Assembly (NCBI RefSeq): GCF_000315625.1
Contig: NW_005434655.1
Location: 314,093-378,092, forward strand
From: Guillardia theta CCMP2712
Lineage: Eukaryota; Protista; Cryptophyta
Length of the DNA: 64,000 nt
Direction: 5' to 3'
Shown: piece by piece, positions 2,315-43,800 of the stretch
Position numbering within the stretch: the first letter of the stretch is position 1
Layout: the number at the start of each line of letters is the position of its first letter
Notes under the pieces: model-generated
What the model was told of the DNA's origin: nothing
The model's input: only the letters and a program-made list of their open reading frames with translations
Databases searched by the model: none
Made by a program: the position numbers and the translations under genes

Positions 2315-3576
2315 TCACAGGAAGAAGTCCTGTCTCAGCTTGTTCTTGCTGTCGCTGCGCCTGGTGGGGGCAGAGCTGAAGACGTTGAAGTGAAAGTCAA
2401 GCGCCTCGTCGACCTCGAGGATCGACGCCAAGTTGCCGCACCTGCCACAAGATGAGGAGCAGGAGCAGGAGCAGGAGAAGGAGCAGGGGCAGGGGCAGGG
2501 GCAGGGGCAGGGGCAGGGAGGAAGGAGAGTGACTATAAGAGAACGGAGGTAGATGAAGAGGTTTGCGAGGAGGTGGCAGCAAGGCAGAAGACCTGTAGCA
2601 GTAGTTGGGCGCTGACCAAACGGTTGACAGCAAGTTGTCAAACATGACCTGCAAGAAGAGAAGAGTCAGCTCGGTTGCGAAAGAGAAGCGCAGGAGTAAC
2701 TGATGTTGGTTGAGACGGAAGAACGTCAGAGCAGAAGCATGGATAAAGAGAGGAGGAGGAGGAGGAGGAGGAGGAGGAGGGCGAGGTGGTGGAGCAGCAC
2801 CAGCAGCAGCGGAGGGGAGGAAGAGGGGGGGAGGTTACGGGTCGTCGTTGTCACCTGGTAGCCTTCCATGCAGAGTTGGTGAGCTCGGAGAACGTGAATG
2901 AGGCCGTTCTCCTGCAGGAATTGCTGCACGACATCGGCGCCGAAGGTGTAGCCTGCTCCTCTTGTGGACTAGTAGAGGGAGTCAGGAGAGGGGAGAGGAT
3001 AGCGGGAGGGATGGAGAAGAAGAGGATCAGGGAAGAAGAAGGGAGGAGAGAAGGACGGCAGGAACGGAAAAGGGAGGAAGGAAAAAGGAGGGAAAGAAAG
3101 GAATAGGGATGGAAGACACGGAAGGAAAAGGACGAACGGAAAGGAGGGGAGGCAACCGGGTTGAAGCCTTCACGATTCGGGTCTGGGTCTGAAATTTTCC
3201 CATTAACGTTCGTCAAGCAAGCGTTGGGCATCCTCGTCACCTGACCAGAGCAGATCTGCCGCTGCGCCGTCACTGGGGATCTGAGGGCAAGGAGTAGCTT
3301 CAGTCGGCGAGCAGGCGCCGAGTGAGGGGGATGACGGGCAAGCAGAGGGATCGAAGAGCGGAAGATGTAAGAACAAGAGAAAAGGAAGGGAGGGGAAGAG
3401 GAGAGGAGGGAGGAGAGGAGAGGAGAGAGAGAGGGGAGTGGATATTCTAATTTCGACCTCCTGAAACCTGTCGATGAGTGATATTTGTTCGATCGTCCAC
3501 ACGGACGGGGAAAGGCCTGGTGTTAGTGAAAGGTCAAGAAAGTAGGAGAACGAGAAGTAGGATAAAAATTCGAGCG

Positions 3577-3632
<56 letters not shown>

Positions 3633-3639
3633 CAGCAGG

Positions 3640-3682
<43 letters not shown>

Positions 3683-4685
3683 AGAGGTACCTCCATGCAC
3701 ACAGAATATGGACTCGTCGATGACAGCAGCGAGGGGCAGAAAGTCGAAGAGGTCGGTGAAATGTTTCCTGCCCCGACGACCCATCAGACACCCCCACCTC
3801 AACCCCTCCTGATCTTCTTCTCACCAGACCGCCGCGTCCCCGTACTTCCTGACGCACTCCGAGTAGAACCCGTAGACCTGAACGACCGTCTCAGAAGCTC
3901 TGGGGCTCCAGAGCTCGAGTTGATCGCCCAGCAGCTCCCCTCCTCCCTCCCCACGTCACCTGGGTGATCTGCCGCGACTCGTGGTTGCCTCGAATGAGCT
4001 TGATCCTCCCTGCACGCCTCGTCACTCCCCGCACGTCGGACACCTTGACCTCACGAGGGTATCGCACAGAGAGGCATGCAAGCAGGGAGATCGTCTCCAC
4101 GCTGTGGCTGCGCTGCTGTCTCAGTCCCACACCAGCCCTCCCCCGCCCGACGTTCCTTCCTCTGTCCACAAAGTCTCCCAGGAACAAGTAGTTGGTGCTG
4201 GGACAGAATCCGCCGACTCGGAACAAGTCCAGGAGGTCCTGAGTCGCAGCCAGTGAGGGAGGAAAGAAGTCAGAGCAGCAGGACATGGAACTGTCCATGG
4301 ATGTCGCCGACAACTGTGACAGGCGCTCGTATGCTACACACTGCCAGCAACGAGTTTGAAAGGAGGGACCGCAAAAACGGCATGCGCACCGTTGGGCTCG
4401 TTCAAGAGGATTTCTTTCAACTGCAGGCAGACGTCCGCAACTTCTTCTTCCTTGAGCAGTTCAAGCCTGAAGTCACATAGTCATCGTCACCCTTCTATCC
4501 TCCTACTTCCACTAGACAACTGTTGTGGCTGACTCTGTAAACGACCGTGAAAGTCAGGAGTTCATGAACGCCTGCTTCTGCTTCTGCTCCTGCTCCTGCC
4601 CCTGCCCCTGCCCCTGCCCCTGCCCCTGCCCCTGCCCCTGCCCCTGCCCCTGCTCCTGCTCCTCGCTCCTCGCTCCTCGCTCCTC

Positions 4686-4737
<52 letters not shown>

Positions 4738-4777
4738 ACTTCACTTACCGCATGCATCGCTCGATGCGAGCATCCAT
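2315..4777 (-). CDS. PPG1: Ser/Thr protein phosphatase, PP2A family, PPG1-like (multi-exon)
   Basis: Spliced exons give [135 protein letters not shown] and LSTVWSAP match the PPG1 subtype. Confidence 0.92.
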
Positions 4778-38650: not shown

Positions 38651-40587
38651 TTATTTCTGTAAATGATACACGCAATCATGTACTGCCTTGCTCCTGTAAT
38701 CCTCCCACATCATGTTCCGTCTGAGGTCTTCTCGAATGTCGTCGTCATCGAACAAGTATTCCATGTCGTCACATAGCTGGTCGCTCGATCAGGTTTTGCT
38801 CAGGTGTCTCAGTGATATACCTCTTTCAATCGCTCTGACAACCCTCCCTCCACAAGCTTGAGAAACGACGATCTTGAAAGCACCAGCAACTCGCTTTCAT
38901 ACTGCCACACGTGTAAATCGAACAAGAGGAGGATAAGAGGAGCAGATTTGATGGTATGTAGATCGAGTGTTACCGATGCGACGACAGTAGCTGACCTTCG
39001 CTTCTTGTGGATCATCGACCATTCCCCGAAGAAGTCTCCCTGGGGACGAGCTCAACAGAGAGAGGAGCGTGTGTCGGTACAGTACCCTCAGCAGCTGCCG
39101 AAGTTCGACATGCCTTGTCGCTCTCCTGTACTTCTATCCCAATTGTGAGCGACTGCATGCTGAGATGTCGACAACCTCAAGGGACGTCGGACTCGCAGGC
39201 ATCCTTAGCTCCGTCCTCGCCCCTCCTTCCCTCCTGCTCAAACCCGCGGGCGCTTGACTGCTGCTCCTGTCCGGTCTCTCCGTCACGTAAGGCAACCCTT
39301 TCCTTGCCCTCACCGCTTGATCCCCATAGACCCGTCGCTTCTCCTCGCGTGCTCGTTTTCCTCCATCCCCTTCGCTCTTGCCTGGAGGACACACCCTTGA
39401 TTGTCATGCACATGGACGCGGGTCTCACGTTGCTCGGGCTGGACATGCTGCTGCGCGGAGGATCCTCCTTGCTTATCCTCTTGATCACTCGGCACTGAGA
39501 GCAGCGACGTCATGTTGTCAGCACCCGCTGGAGGAGACTTACCATCCCTCGGAGGATGAGGAAGAACTCGGACGGAGAGTCTCCTTCTCTCACAACAACC
39601 TCACCAGCCTTGCAGTGTCGGACCTGCTAAGAAGTAAGGAGGAAGCAGAGGCAAGCAGCTGGTTCCTTGGTCGCATCGACAAGTCTCTGAAGCTGTTCCT
39701 CTTCGACCTTCTCAAACAACTTGGTGGATCTGAGGAAGGAGGAGTATTCCTTGACCTGCACGGGTGCAGTCAGAAGAAGCGGAAGCTTCCAAGAGCTTCA
39801 CACCAGGTCCGAGCAGCAGGAGCGATAGAGTTCCCTCGATATCCTTACCACCCCTGACCCACCAGCCTCAACGCGAGCACAAGGGAGGAGTCAAGGAACC
39901 GCTCTGATCGTGAAAGACTTGAACCTCTGAAGGTGATGCCTGACCATCGTCTGACTGCAGGCTCCCGTACGCGTCGCCCGGGAGGAGGAGATGTTGCTCG
40001 GCCTCTTGTTCGCCTCCTTTTCCTCTGCATTCCACTCGCACTGAGCCATAGACAATGATGTCGAGGAAATCACAAGCCTCGTCCTGCAGGTCTATCAAGA
40101 CATGTTTGATTCCTGTAGGACTTACCTTGTTAAGAAGAAATTCATCTTTCCTCAGGTTGTGATAGAATGTACATTTCTGCAACAGCTGAGAGCATGTCAC
40201 AATAAGCTTCAGATTGGCTTTTGCTCTACTTTGAACCAGAGAGCTTGGTTTTGATCTTTGTCTTGCAATGAAGAATAGAACTGAAAGCCTTCGACTTGCT
40301 GCACAAGTGCCTGCAGCTAAAACGACATTCAGAAGCAAGCAGCTCATGCTCACTAGCACTTTTCTCTTGTCTCGCAGATGCCATTCCGGCGTGAGCGATT
40401 GACAGAAGGCCTTGTTGATGTCGTCTGCTAGTGAATCCTGCTCGCGTTTTTCCAAGAGAGCGTCGATCTCATGGTAGAGGGAACGGATGGAGCAAGTGTC
40501 TTGACTCTCCTTGTCTTGCTCCTCATCTGCTGCATTGTGAACACACTCCCTTGAGCCCGAGCCCTCACTCTGTGATCTCCGTCGCAT
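38651..40587 (-). CDS. Cyclic nucleotide-binding domain protein (CNBD-like, multi-exon)
   Basis: LFEKVEEEQLQRLVDATK-VRHCKAGEVVVREGDSPSEFFLILRGMCRV and GDFFGEWSMIHKKRRSATVVA. A degenerate first domain has IIVYGSVRV...PGDAYG. Confidence 0.8.
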
Positions 40588-40884
40588 GCCACCGCGCGAG
40601 CTCACGGGGAGGAAGGGGATGAAGGGGAGGATGGGGAGGAAAGGGAGGAGAAGAAAGGGGAGGGGGGGGAGGGGAGGAAGGGAAGGGGAGGAAGGGGAGG
40701 GTGAGACGGGGAGGGCCAGTCGGGCAGTGCGAGCAGGGGGGTAAAAAGGGGAGGCGGGGGCGGCAGTTGGCAGTAAATTGAGGGACCGGAGCCTGGAGGG
40801 AGGGCATGGCGTTGCTACCGGCAGGAGGAGCGGGAGGGAGGGGAGGGGAGGAGCGAATGTGAGCCAAGGAGAGAGCTAGAGGTT

Positions 40885-43800
40885 ATGCCGGCCAATCCAC
40901 CCGACAAAGATGGAGGGAGGGAACGAGATTATCGTCTCAAAGCTGCGCTCCTCCGTCGAAACGCAGCAGCAGCGAAAGCCAAATACGGGGACAACATCCC
41001 AGTCGAGCATGAGGCGCCGCCTGAGGAGAAAAGGTTCTCAACCTTGGAGATCCTCTCTCGCAGGAAGTTCGTTGGGATTCCCATCCGAATGGTGCAGGCG
41101 CAGCTCGAGAAGAGGAGGAACGAGAGGCGAGCGGTGGAGGAGAAGGAGGCCAGGTAAGGCGAAGGAGGAGGAGCAAGCATGTGACGAGACGCTACCTCAG
41201 GCGGACATGGGAGCTGCTGGAGATGTTGGAACCTGGCGTCCGGGTCAAGCTCCGCAACGTCGCGCGGGTGGGGGGGAGGAACTACAACGGGCAGCTGGCG
41301 ACTGTGATCGCAGACTTTGGGGACATGTACAAGGTGAAGCTGGACAAGGTGGAACGAGATGGAGCGGTGAGGAAGGGGGAGGGAGCCGAGCTGAGAGTGG
41401 CAGTGAGCAACATGGAGATCTGGGACGAGGAGGTGGAGGAGGCGCTGGGGAAGGAGATGGACCAAGTTCGATCGCAGTACGCGGCTCAACGGAGAAGCAC
41501 AATGATGAGCATGCTGAGACTTGAGCCTCGGGTGATGGCGAGCGAGGAGGTTGCCGAGGAGCACGAGGAAGTGAAGGCAGAGACTGAGATCGCCTTCGAG
41601 GACCTCACGCACTCTAGCGATGAGAATGTCTTGCGAGACTTTCACCGGCAGAAGCAACTGAAAGTCAAGTTAGGGAAGTATGACAACCCGGAAGAAATGT
41701 TTGTCAAGATTCAGAGTGAATGGAAGGAGAGGGAGCTGGTGACAGCAAACTACAACAGATCCCTCAAAGACTGCGAAGCTGCCATCCGTATCACTTCATC
41801 TCAGCCTTCCCTTAAGCAGAAAGACGGCAAGTTCGGCCCAAACCCTGCCTTGCGGATAGCGCAGATTGCGCTGAAACAAGCGAGGACGCAAGTGAAGGAT
41901 TTGTTTTCACATCAGGTCCGTCACTTCAAGGTCAACAAGGTGGAGGGCACCATTGCCTTCCTCCAGCCCTCCGATCGACGGCAAGCGACCTCGAGCGACG
42001 TCTCGTATGTGAAGCAGACGCTGGTGGTGGAGGAAGGGGTCGGCAAGGGTCAGTTCGGAACCATCAGCGGTCACTGGGAGGAGGAGCACAAGGTAGAACT
42101 CTTCCGGTGGTACGCGGCGACATGCGACCAGACGTCCAGCTACCGGGTGCTCAACTCTCACTTCCTTCCCCTCCACATCCACGGGCGCGTGCAACGAGCC
42201 ACCAAGACCACAGTGATGCTGTCGGAGAACGCGGAGGAGGAGGACAACTGCTACCGGCACATGATCCTCCGCATCACCAAGGGCCCGGGGAAGTCGCAGC
42301 GAGCTAAGGTGCTGGAGTACAACGGGAAGACGCGGGTGGCGGTGATCGACGGGTGGGAGTGGGACAAGAGCTGGCTGGAGCAGGCGCTGGATCAGGACGA
42401 CAACGACCTTGAGACGAGTATCCCCACAGCAGAGAGCCTCTACAAGCTCCACTACTCCGACCGCGCCGGTAAGACCATCGAGCTCCCGCTCGAGGGCAGG
42501 TGCTCCAAGATTTCAGCTGAGGGAGAGCTGAGCCTCTCTGCGAGTGCTCCTGGTGAAGATTTCTTCTCCGGGAAGACGCTTGTGATCACGAATGGGATGG
42601 GAAAGGGACAGAGAGCGAAGATCGAGAGCTATGACGCTCTGCGCAAAAGTATGAAGATATCAGACTGGGTGCTGGCAGCCCCCGATCAAACTTCGAGATG
42701 TGCTGTGTACGAGTGCAAGCTCTTCGATGAGAAGCTGTACCAGCTGGAGAAGACGATTACCGAGAAAGAAGAGCAAGCAAAACAACGAGTAGAGCGAGAC
42801 GAGAGCGAGCGGCGGAAGCGAATCCGAGCTAAGATGTGGGCAGCAGTGAGAGTGTACAAGATGGCTGAGCAGCATGGGGAGAAGATCGGCAGGATGAGGA
42901 AACGCTCGAGCGTGTCGGCATGGAGCTACTACAGCGGGGAGAGCGCGTCGAACAAGGTCTACTCCCTCATGATCGGAGGTGAGAAGGTGCGCGTGAAGTG
43001 GAGCTTTCTCGTGCTCCAAGGTAAGCCGGTGGACCCGGCGATCCTGAAGACGATGGAAGTGAAGAGGAGCGTGAAGTTGGAGGAGGAGGAAGAGGAGAAG
43101 GAGGAGGACGGGGGAAAGTGTCTCATCATGTGGAAGGGAAGGATCCTTCAGATGCCGAGGTACTCAGCTGATACGATGACCCCCAACGGGAGCGTGAGGA
43201 CGCCGGTGAGGGTGGTGGACTACCTGTCGCAGCAGGTGGTCTACGAGGGAGCCTGCGACGGAGGCGATCTGTGGAAGTCGCTTAGCGAGGAGTCGCAAGA
43301 GATCGAGGGGGAGGAGGATGTGTTCGCGTGGAAGGGTCGGCGAGTGTTGCAGCCGCTCAAGACGGAGGATGAGCAGGGGAGGACAGTCTACACGATAGTG
43401 GACGATGATAACGGTCAGATCTTGTACAGCGGGATAGATGATGACTTGAGCAGCGAGGAAAGCGAGGAGGAGGAGGAGGAGGAAGTGGAGCAGGAGGAGG
43501 ATGGGGGAAAGAAGTTGTCACGCGATACCAAAGACTTCATGAAGAGGATCGCGGAGAGGGCAGGGCTAACTCAAGGCATCAGCATGGAGCGAGGGAAGAA
43601 GTTGGTGGGGCAGGTCGCCAGTGAGTCAGCAGAGCTGGAGGTGGAGCAGGGGGTGCAAGCAGGAGGGCCCGTGCACATGGTGGGAGGTCAAGTGTGGAAG
43701 GGAGTAGCGGACCCCGAGCTCTGGCAGTCGTTGGTAGAGGAAAGCAGACCATGCCCAGGAGACGCCAACAAGTTCCTGTGGCGGGGGATGGAGCTGATGC

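Follow-up and report, generated by a model that had tools for sequence, protein, structure and literature searches.

RNA-supported GA-AG introns have been described in Oikopleura dioica and Eurytemora affinis, where the donors carry an upstream AG and a downstream A (Frey & Pucker 2020; PMC7072748); according to the same study, one copy of the E. affinis U1 snRNA has a changed 5' end. In the dinoflagellate Symbiodinium, GA and GC donors are used, and GA-AG introns are abundant, with up to 65 in one gene (PMC5100056, PMC5177918). As far as it is recounted in PMC7072748, the work of Brackenridge et al. (2003) on a GA-AG intron of human FGFR indicates that a GA 5' splice site can be used efficiently when the donor context is otherwise good. 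In the open literature searched, there was no description of GA-AG introns in cryptophytes, nor anything specific on GA-AG or non-canonical splice sites in Guillardia. A further point of comparison is provided by exitrons, that is, in-frame protein-coding introns located inside exons, which were reportedly described by Marquez and colleagues in 2015.

Here, an intron of the GA-AG type was analyzed in the nuclear genome of the cryptophyte alga Guillardia theta CCMP2712, within a 64,000-nt stretch of contig NW_005434655.1 (hereafter, the window; all positions are counted from its first letter). The intron is the fourth of 13 in a PPG1-type phosphatase gene that is present in a single copy in the assembly. 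With high confidence, it can be considered a constitutively spliced spliceosomal intron that would be removed by the major spliceosome with an ordinary U1 snRNA, and is probably one case of a general tolerance of GA donors. The relevant features, with a slash marking splice sites here and below, are:

2315..4777, minus strand: coding sequence of a PP2A-like, PPG1-type Ser/Thr phosphatase; 14 exons, 13 introns, 301 aa; the ATG is at 4777, and the stop codon ends at 2315.
4156..4238, minus strand: exon 4; 27 residues plus 2 nt of a Ser codon, including the metal/phosphate-binding GDxVDRG motif.
4108..4155, minus strand: intron 4; GA-AG, 48 nt, with the donor aag/GAACGT at 4155 and the acceptor GCGCAG/cc at 4108.
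4145..4150, minus strand: the canonical-looking donor GTCGGG, 5 nt inside intron 4, recognizable in the sequence and used by no RNA contig.
4055..4107, minus strand: exon 5; (S) plus 17 residues, delineated by RNA contigs and alignment.

To obtain RNA evidence, sequencing runs were searched with region 3700-4560. The search yielded 12 probable RNA runs that contain about one-third of the words, which equals the exonic share of the region, and four DNA runs with a word content of up to 100%. The RNA evidence consists of assembled Logan contigs covering this region, not raw reads, from runs X1, X2, and X8, which belong to three different studies. One contig from each of these runs matched the exons with 0 mismatches, and across the set, six segments were skipped. 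Five of the six are GT-AG introns of 45 to 82 nt, for one of which (4239-4284) only X2 and X8 provide a spanning contig; the remaining segment is 4108-4155. In contigs of all three runs, position 4107 is joined to 4156, with exactly 48 nt skipped, and the ends of the skipped segment, CT..TC on the plus strand, correspond to GA..AG on the coding strand. Because the neighboring GT-AG introns are removed as well, these contigs are of cDNA origin and do not reflect a deletion in a genomic variant. A JGI transcript contig (L122, a 1028-nt cDNA) is colinear with all 14 exons and, at the intron 4 junction, reads GACAGAGGAAG followed directly by CCACAGCGTG. Furthermore, the MMETSP open reading frame (ORF) P0122 (301 aa) and the JGI ORF P0123 both lack the 16 residues encoded by the intron and read DRG-SH-SVET in the alignment. 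Given that X8 (2014), P0122, and L122 may all trace to MMETSP data, these sources were counted as at least three studies rather than five. Mature transcripts lack segment 4108-4155, and joining its flanks brings back the conserved DRG-SH-SVET loop of the active site. A preliminary description of this DNA, made from the sequence alone, had placed a GA-AG intron at exactly these coordinates and had anticipated the restored motif; both claims are borne out by the RNA junction, L122, and P0122, and the motif also by the orthologues.

The protein encoded by the spliced gene is an ordinary member of its family. P0122 matches PP2A-C from end to end (residues 2-301, E 5e-117) and Pfam Metallophos (PF00149, E 3.5e-43); all PPP motifs (GDxHG, GDxVDRG, GNHE, and HGG) are present in the alignment, and the C-terminal D-F-F-L tail resembles the DYFL of PP2A. 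The best full-length matches are 60 to 70% identical and are mostly named PPG1 by their sources, names from which the assignment to the PPG1 type is taken. The 13 residues of the spliced form that span the junction are identical to those of the orthologues P0012 and P0028, so that the agreement is far beyond chance. The 2-residue DRG-xx-S spacing, proposed in the preliminary description to be invariant, indeed is essentially so, being found in 112 of the 115 retrieved homologues with the motif and in 79 of 80 environmental loci. Of the 115, those that deviate are the G. theta mis-model itself, P0005, and P0018. The possibility that P0005 and P0018 contain true insertions was considered and rejected: both are read-throughs of unrecognized canonical GT-AG introns located elsewhere; relative to the G. 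theta position, the one in L010 lies 4 nt upstream, and the one in L011 lies 6 nt downstream. All 80 environmental loci are contiguous at the site of intron 4, and at identities of at most 67%, they include no close relative. Among the G. theta PPP paralogues found (PP4-like, two PP1-like, PP6-like, PP2A, and several more distant ones), no intron was detected at this site; a GT intron after GDYVD in the PP2A gene is the sole exception to contiguity in its vicinity.

The scaffold L010 mentioned above is a eukaryotic ENA metagenome sequence of 2067 nt that carries a PPG1-type gene 60% identical to P0122, with two introns. The first, a GT-AG intron of 54 nt, interrupts the Gly codon of DRG, and the second, a GC-AG intron of 58 nt, is located at ITQ/VYGF, the position of G. 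theta intron 6. With prokaryote-style gene calling, this gene had been broken into two.

Intron 4 is in phase 2, inside the Ser codon that directly follows DRG. Its G+C content is 71%, and a branch-like CTGAG motif lies 17 nt from its 3' end, an arrangement shared with intron 6. The intron boundary is ambiguous by 2 nt. The alternative placements read GG..CA and AG..GC, so GA-AG is the only placement with a normal 3' AG. The donor, aag/GAACGT, shows the AG/GAA context of the described GA-AG classes, and no GT is present at positions -6 to -1 (AGGAAG). The preliminary description pointed to GTCGGG as the alternative donor. This site does exist 5 nt downstream of the GA donor, and comparison with the cDNA shows that none of the RNA contigs uses it.

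The A at position +2 is supported by the assembly and by the DNA runs, which are probably the assembly's own source. This shared origin leaves some room for a technical explanation, under which the true genome would carry GT, owing to an assembly error or a strain difference, or the junction would result from template switching by reverse transcriptase. Non-canonical junctions are a classic product of both routes, and there is a microhomology (AG) at the junction. However, this microhomology is only 2 nt long, and the identical junction, as the sole form, occurs in libraries of at least three studies and exactly restores a conserved motif. As for the genome, every sampled word (100%) from the region around intron 4 is present in contigs of the DNA runs, the 100% exon match argues for the same strain, and a second candidate intron with an AAG/GAAC donor is found in the window (see below). 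An artifact of either kind is very unlikely.

The splice model of the entire gene was built by script from the seven RNA-supported introns and six more, for each of which the script gave just one solution compatible with P0122, in every case a GT-AG boundary. In the resulting model, the 14 exons are 29 to 127 nt long, and the introns comprise 12 GT-AG introns and 1 GA-AG intron. The translation of this model is identical to P0122, and the same model with the 48 nt kept reproduces the GenBank/UniRef protein. The public entries were traced through a word search in which the open frame spanning the site (189 residues) served as the query and was scored over DLLDLF to ITQ only; this search led to the UniRef entry P0001. 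The 90% cluster of P0001 has four members: P0001 itself, EKX49041.1 / XP_005836021.1 (P0121), P0122, and P0123. The 16 residues are kept only in P0001 and P0121, both derived from annotation. The public model XP_005836021.1, which is marked partial, and its UniRef copy read intron 4 as coding and also lack the first exon:

4749-4777, minus strand: exon 1; 10 residues, present in the MMETSP ORF and the RNA contigs, missing from the public model.

As stated in the preliminary description, the unspliced frame runs from GDFVDRG through 16 extra residues into SHSVET, and the 48 nt, a multiple of three, contain no in-frame stop codon. Because the intron is in frame and stop-free, the public model missed it. 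One could still argue for the GenBank model, in which the 48 nt code for protein and the main product has a loop insertion of 16 residues specific to this lineage. The frame is open, and the residues are included in XP_005836021.1 and the UniRef entry; however, both entries are computed models, and every transcript-derived sequence lacks the 48 nt. The probability of this reading is next to nil. The preliminary description named an insertion shared by orthologues as grounds for refuting the intron; the 16 residues are of low complexity and are absent from all homologues, retrieved proteins and environmental loci alike. Intron 4 belongs to an already known rare intron class, and the gene model is an annotation error. 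The reference protein is corrected accordingly: in XP_005836021.1 and the UniRef entry, the catalytic loop contains 16 spurious residues, and the first exon is missing.

An internal control is available in the same gene, where the next intron has the properties of intron 4 combined with a canonical donor:

4010..4054, minus strand: adjacent GT-AG intron; 45 nt, in frame and stop-free, supported by RNA contigs and by a gap in the alignment with PDB sequences.

In the PDB alignment, the unspliced frame is interrupted twice, by a gap of 16 residues that corresponds to intron 4 and by one of 15 residues that corresponds to this 45-nt intron.

The preliminary description further suggested that retention of intron 4 acts as an on/off switch, a suggestion that finds no support. 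Under this scenario, which resembles regulated retention of an exitron, inefficient or conditional splicing would toggle between the active enzyme and a full-length inactive form whose active-site loop is 16 residues longer. The length and the stop-free frame of the intron would allow this, the weak +2 position could make splicing condition dependent, intron retention is common in G. theta and favors short introns (PMC6142364), and another intron of the same gene is retained in one contig. The stop-free frame, however, is uninformative because it is expected by chance: 67% of shuffled intron 4 sequences are stop-free in frame, and among the six introns of the gene with a length divisible by three, four are stop-free. 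Moreover, intron 4 is retained neither in the contigs of the three RNA runs nor in the MMETSP ORF or the JGI transcript, and the peptide that retention would add is the low-complexity one found in no homologue. Contigs can hide rare isoforms, and low-level retention of intron 4 may occur; a regulatory switch is nevertheless unlikely.

The alternative splicing that was observed in this gene sits not at intron 4 but at the acceptor of intron 1 and in the retention of intron 3:

4467..4748, minus strand: intron 1; GT-AG, 282 nt, microsatellite rich, with a second acceptor at 4535.

The acceptor at 4467, used in X1, X8, and P0122, is productive. Conversely, the acceptor at 4535, used in the X2 contig and in L122, adds 69 nt with an in-frame TAG soon after the start codon; the resulting isoform is unproductive, yet abundant enough to be assembled. 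The 46-nt GT-AG intron 3 (4239-4284, minus strand) is retained in one X1 contig with a depth of 4, compared with 15 for the spliced contig, and its retention causes a frameshift and a stop.

The gene also contains hexamer microsatellites of the (GCAGGA)n, (GGGGCA)n, and (GAGGAGC)n type, at 3575-3690, 4570-4740, and 2450-2530. These fill introns 8, 1, and 13, respectively, and the short introns are free of them.

The splicing machinery of G. theta was searched for features that could account for the use of a GA donor. Three identical U1 snRNA genes (L001-L003) are arranged in tandem, ∼1.8 kb apart, at G000:C2:80288-84087, and the 5' end of all three is canonical, AUACUUACCUGG. The idea that a variant U1 could pair with the A at +2 was rejected, all three copies being canonical. 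The donor of intron 4, AAG/GAACGU, forms 6 of 9 Watson-Crick pairs with U1 (positions -3 to +6), with mismatches that include +2 and +4; the twelve GT donors of the gene form 4 to 7. The major (U2-type) spliceosome with its ordinary U1 would thus be expected to remove intron 4: the A at +2 would be tolerated because the rest of the donor keeps 6 of the 9 pairs, a number that equals or exceeds that of most GT donors of the gene. Similarity to the neighboring tiny introns is also seen in the branch-like CUGAG and in the CAG acceptor. It is extremely improbable that intron 4 is instead a U12-type (minor-spliceosome) intron or is otherwise specially processed. Minor-type introns have been reported in G. 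theta annotations (PMC11347168), but the donor GAACGTCG is unlike [AG]TATCCTT, and there is no TCCTTAAC-like branch site. The genome search gave no match for U12 or U6atac, with the best candidates scored without a positive control, and PMC11347168 is in line with their absence from G. theta. With the major spliceosome as the preferred agent, intron 4 is probably an instance of general tolerance to GA donors in this alga and not a gene-specific regulatory device.

A second candidate GA-AG intron lies in the same window, in a gene that encodes a cyclic-nucleotide-binding domain:

39624-39665, minus strand: candidate GA-AG intron; 42 nt, with the donor ccaag/GAACCA (ccaag/GAACCAGC) and the acceptor TTAGCAG/gtc, predicted from homology only.

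Removal of this segment joins ...LVDATK to VRHCKAGEVVVREGD. The downstream exon (39543-39623), which encodes VRHCKAGEVVVREGD, matches positions 2-27 of the cNMP-binding domain PF00027 (E 8e-5). The candidate intron contains an in-frame TAG, so its splicing would be obligatory. It has the AAG/GAAC donor in common with intron 4 of the phosphatase gene. In the search for a transcript of this intron, the only sequence match was L123, a metagenome contig whose sequence stops 8 nt short of the donor.

The genomic contig L123 (ENA ERZ930071, 1234 nt) shares 83% DNA identity with part of 39674-40940 and is colinear with it through an intron. This similarity suggests that a close relative of G. theta was present in the environmental sample.

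Whether GA-AG introns with AAG/GAA(C) donors form a recurrent class in the nuclear genome of G. theta, spliced by an unmodified U1, is evenly balanced on the present data. If they do, cryptophytes would be a further lineage with a relaxed +2 position, beside dinoflagellates, Oikopleura, and Eurytemora, and G. theta would offer a tractable spliceosome in which a canonical U1 accepts A at +2. In practical terms, the 2012 reference annotation would then be systematically wrong, with spurious insertions where such introns are in frame and broken models otherwise, and gene finders for G. theta and related algae would need GA donors enabled. By itself, intron 4 reveals no new regulatory mechanism; what it provides is an RNA-proven GA-AG intron in a cryptophyte.

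Compared with yeast Ppg1 and its relatives, the phosphatase shows nothing unusual once the intron is removed, given its 60 to 70% identity to PPG1-named proteins and its complete set of PPP motifs. With exitrons, intron 4 shares a multiple-of-three length, the lack of stop codons, a location inside conserved coding sequence, and annotation as coding. It differs from them in that no retained transcript was seen, the peptide is unconserved and of low complexity, and the exitron-like property is shared by chance with neighboring canonical introns. The human FGFR intron is similar in the use, apparently efficient in G. theta as well, of a GA site within a good donor context; what sets the G. theta intron apart is that positions -6 to -1 contain no GT, and the sole nearby GT, 5 nt downstream, is unused. 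As in Symbiodinium, nuclear protein-coding genes of an alga make use of GA donors, which standard gene finders miss, although, in contrast to the abundance of such donors in Symbiodinium, the other 12 introns of the G. theta gene are all GT-AG. The closest parallels are the introns of Oikopleura and Eurytemora, with which intron 4 shares an RNA-supported GA donor, an AG acceptor, the AG/GAA context (here, aag/GAA), and, presumably, removal by the major spliceosome. Unlike the E. affinis genome with its changed U1 copy, G. theta encodes three identical canonical copies, and the intron described here comes from a cryptophyte alga, is a tiny intron of 48 nt, and is 1 of the 13 introns of its gene.
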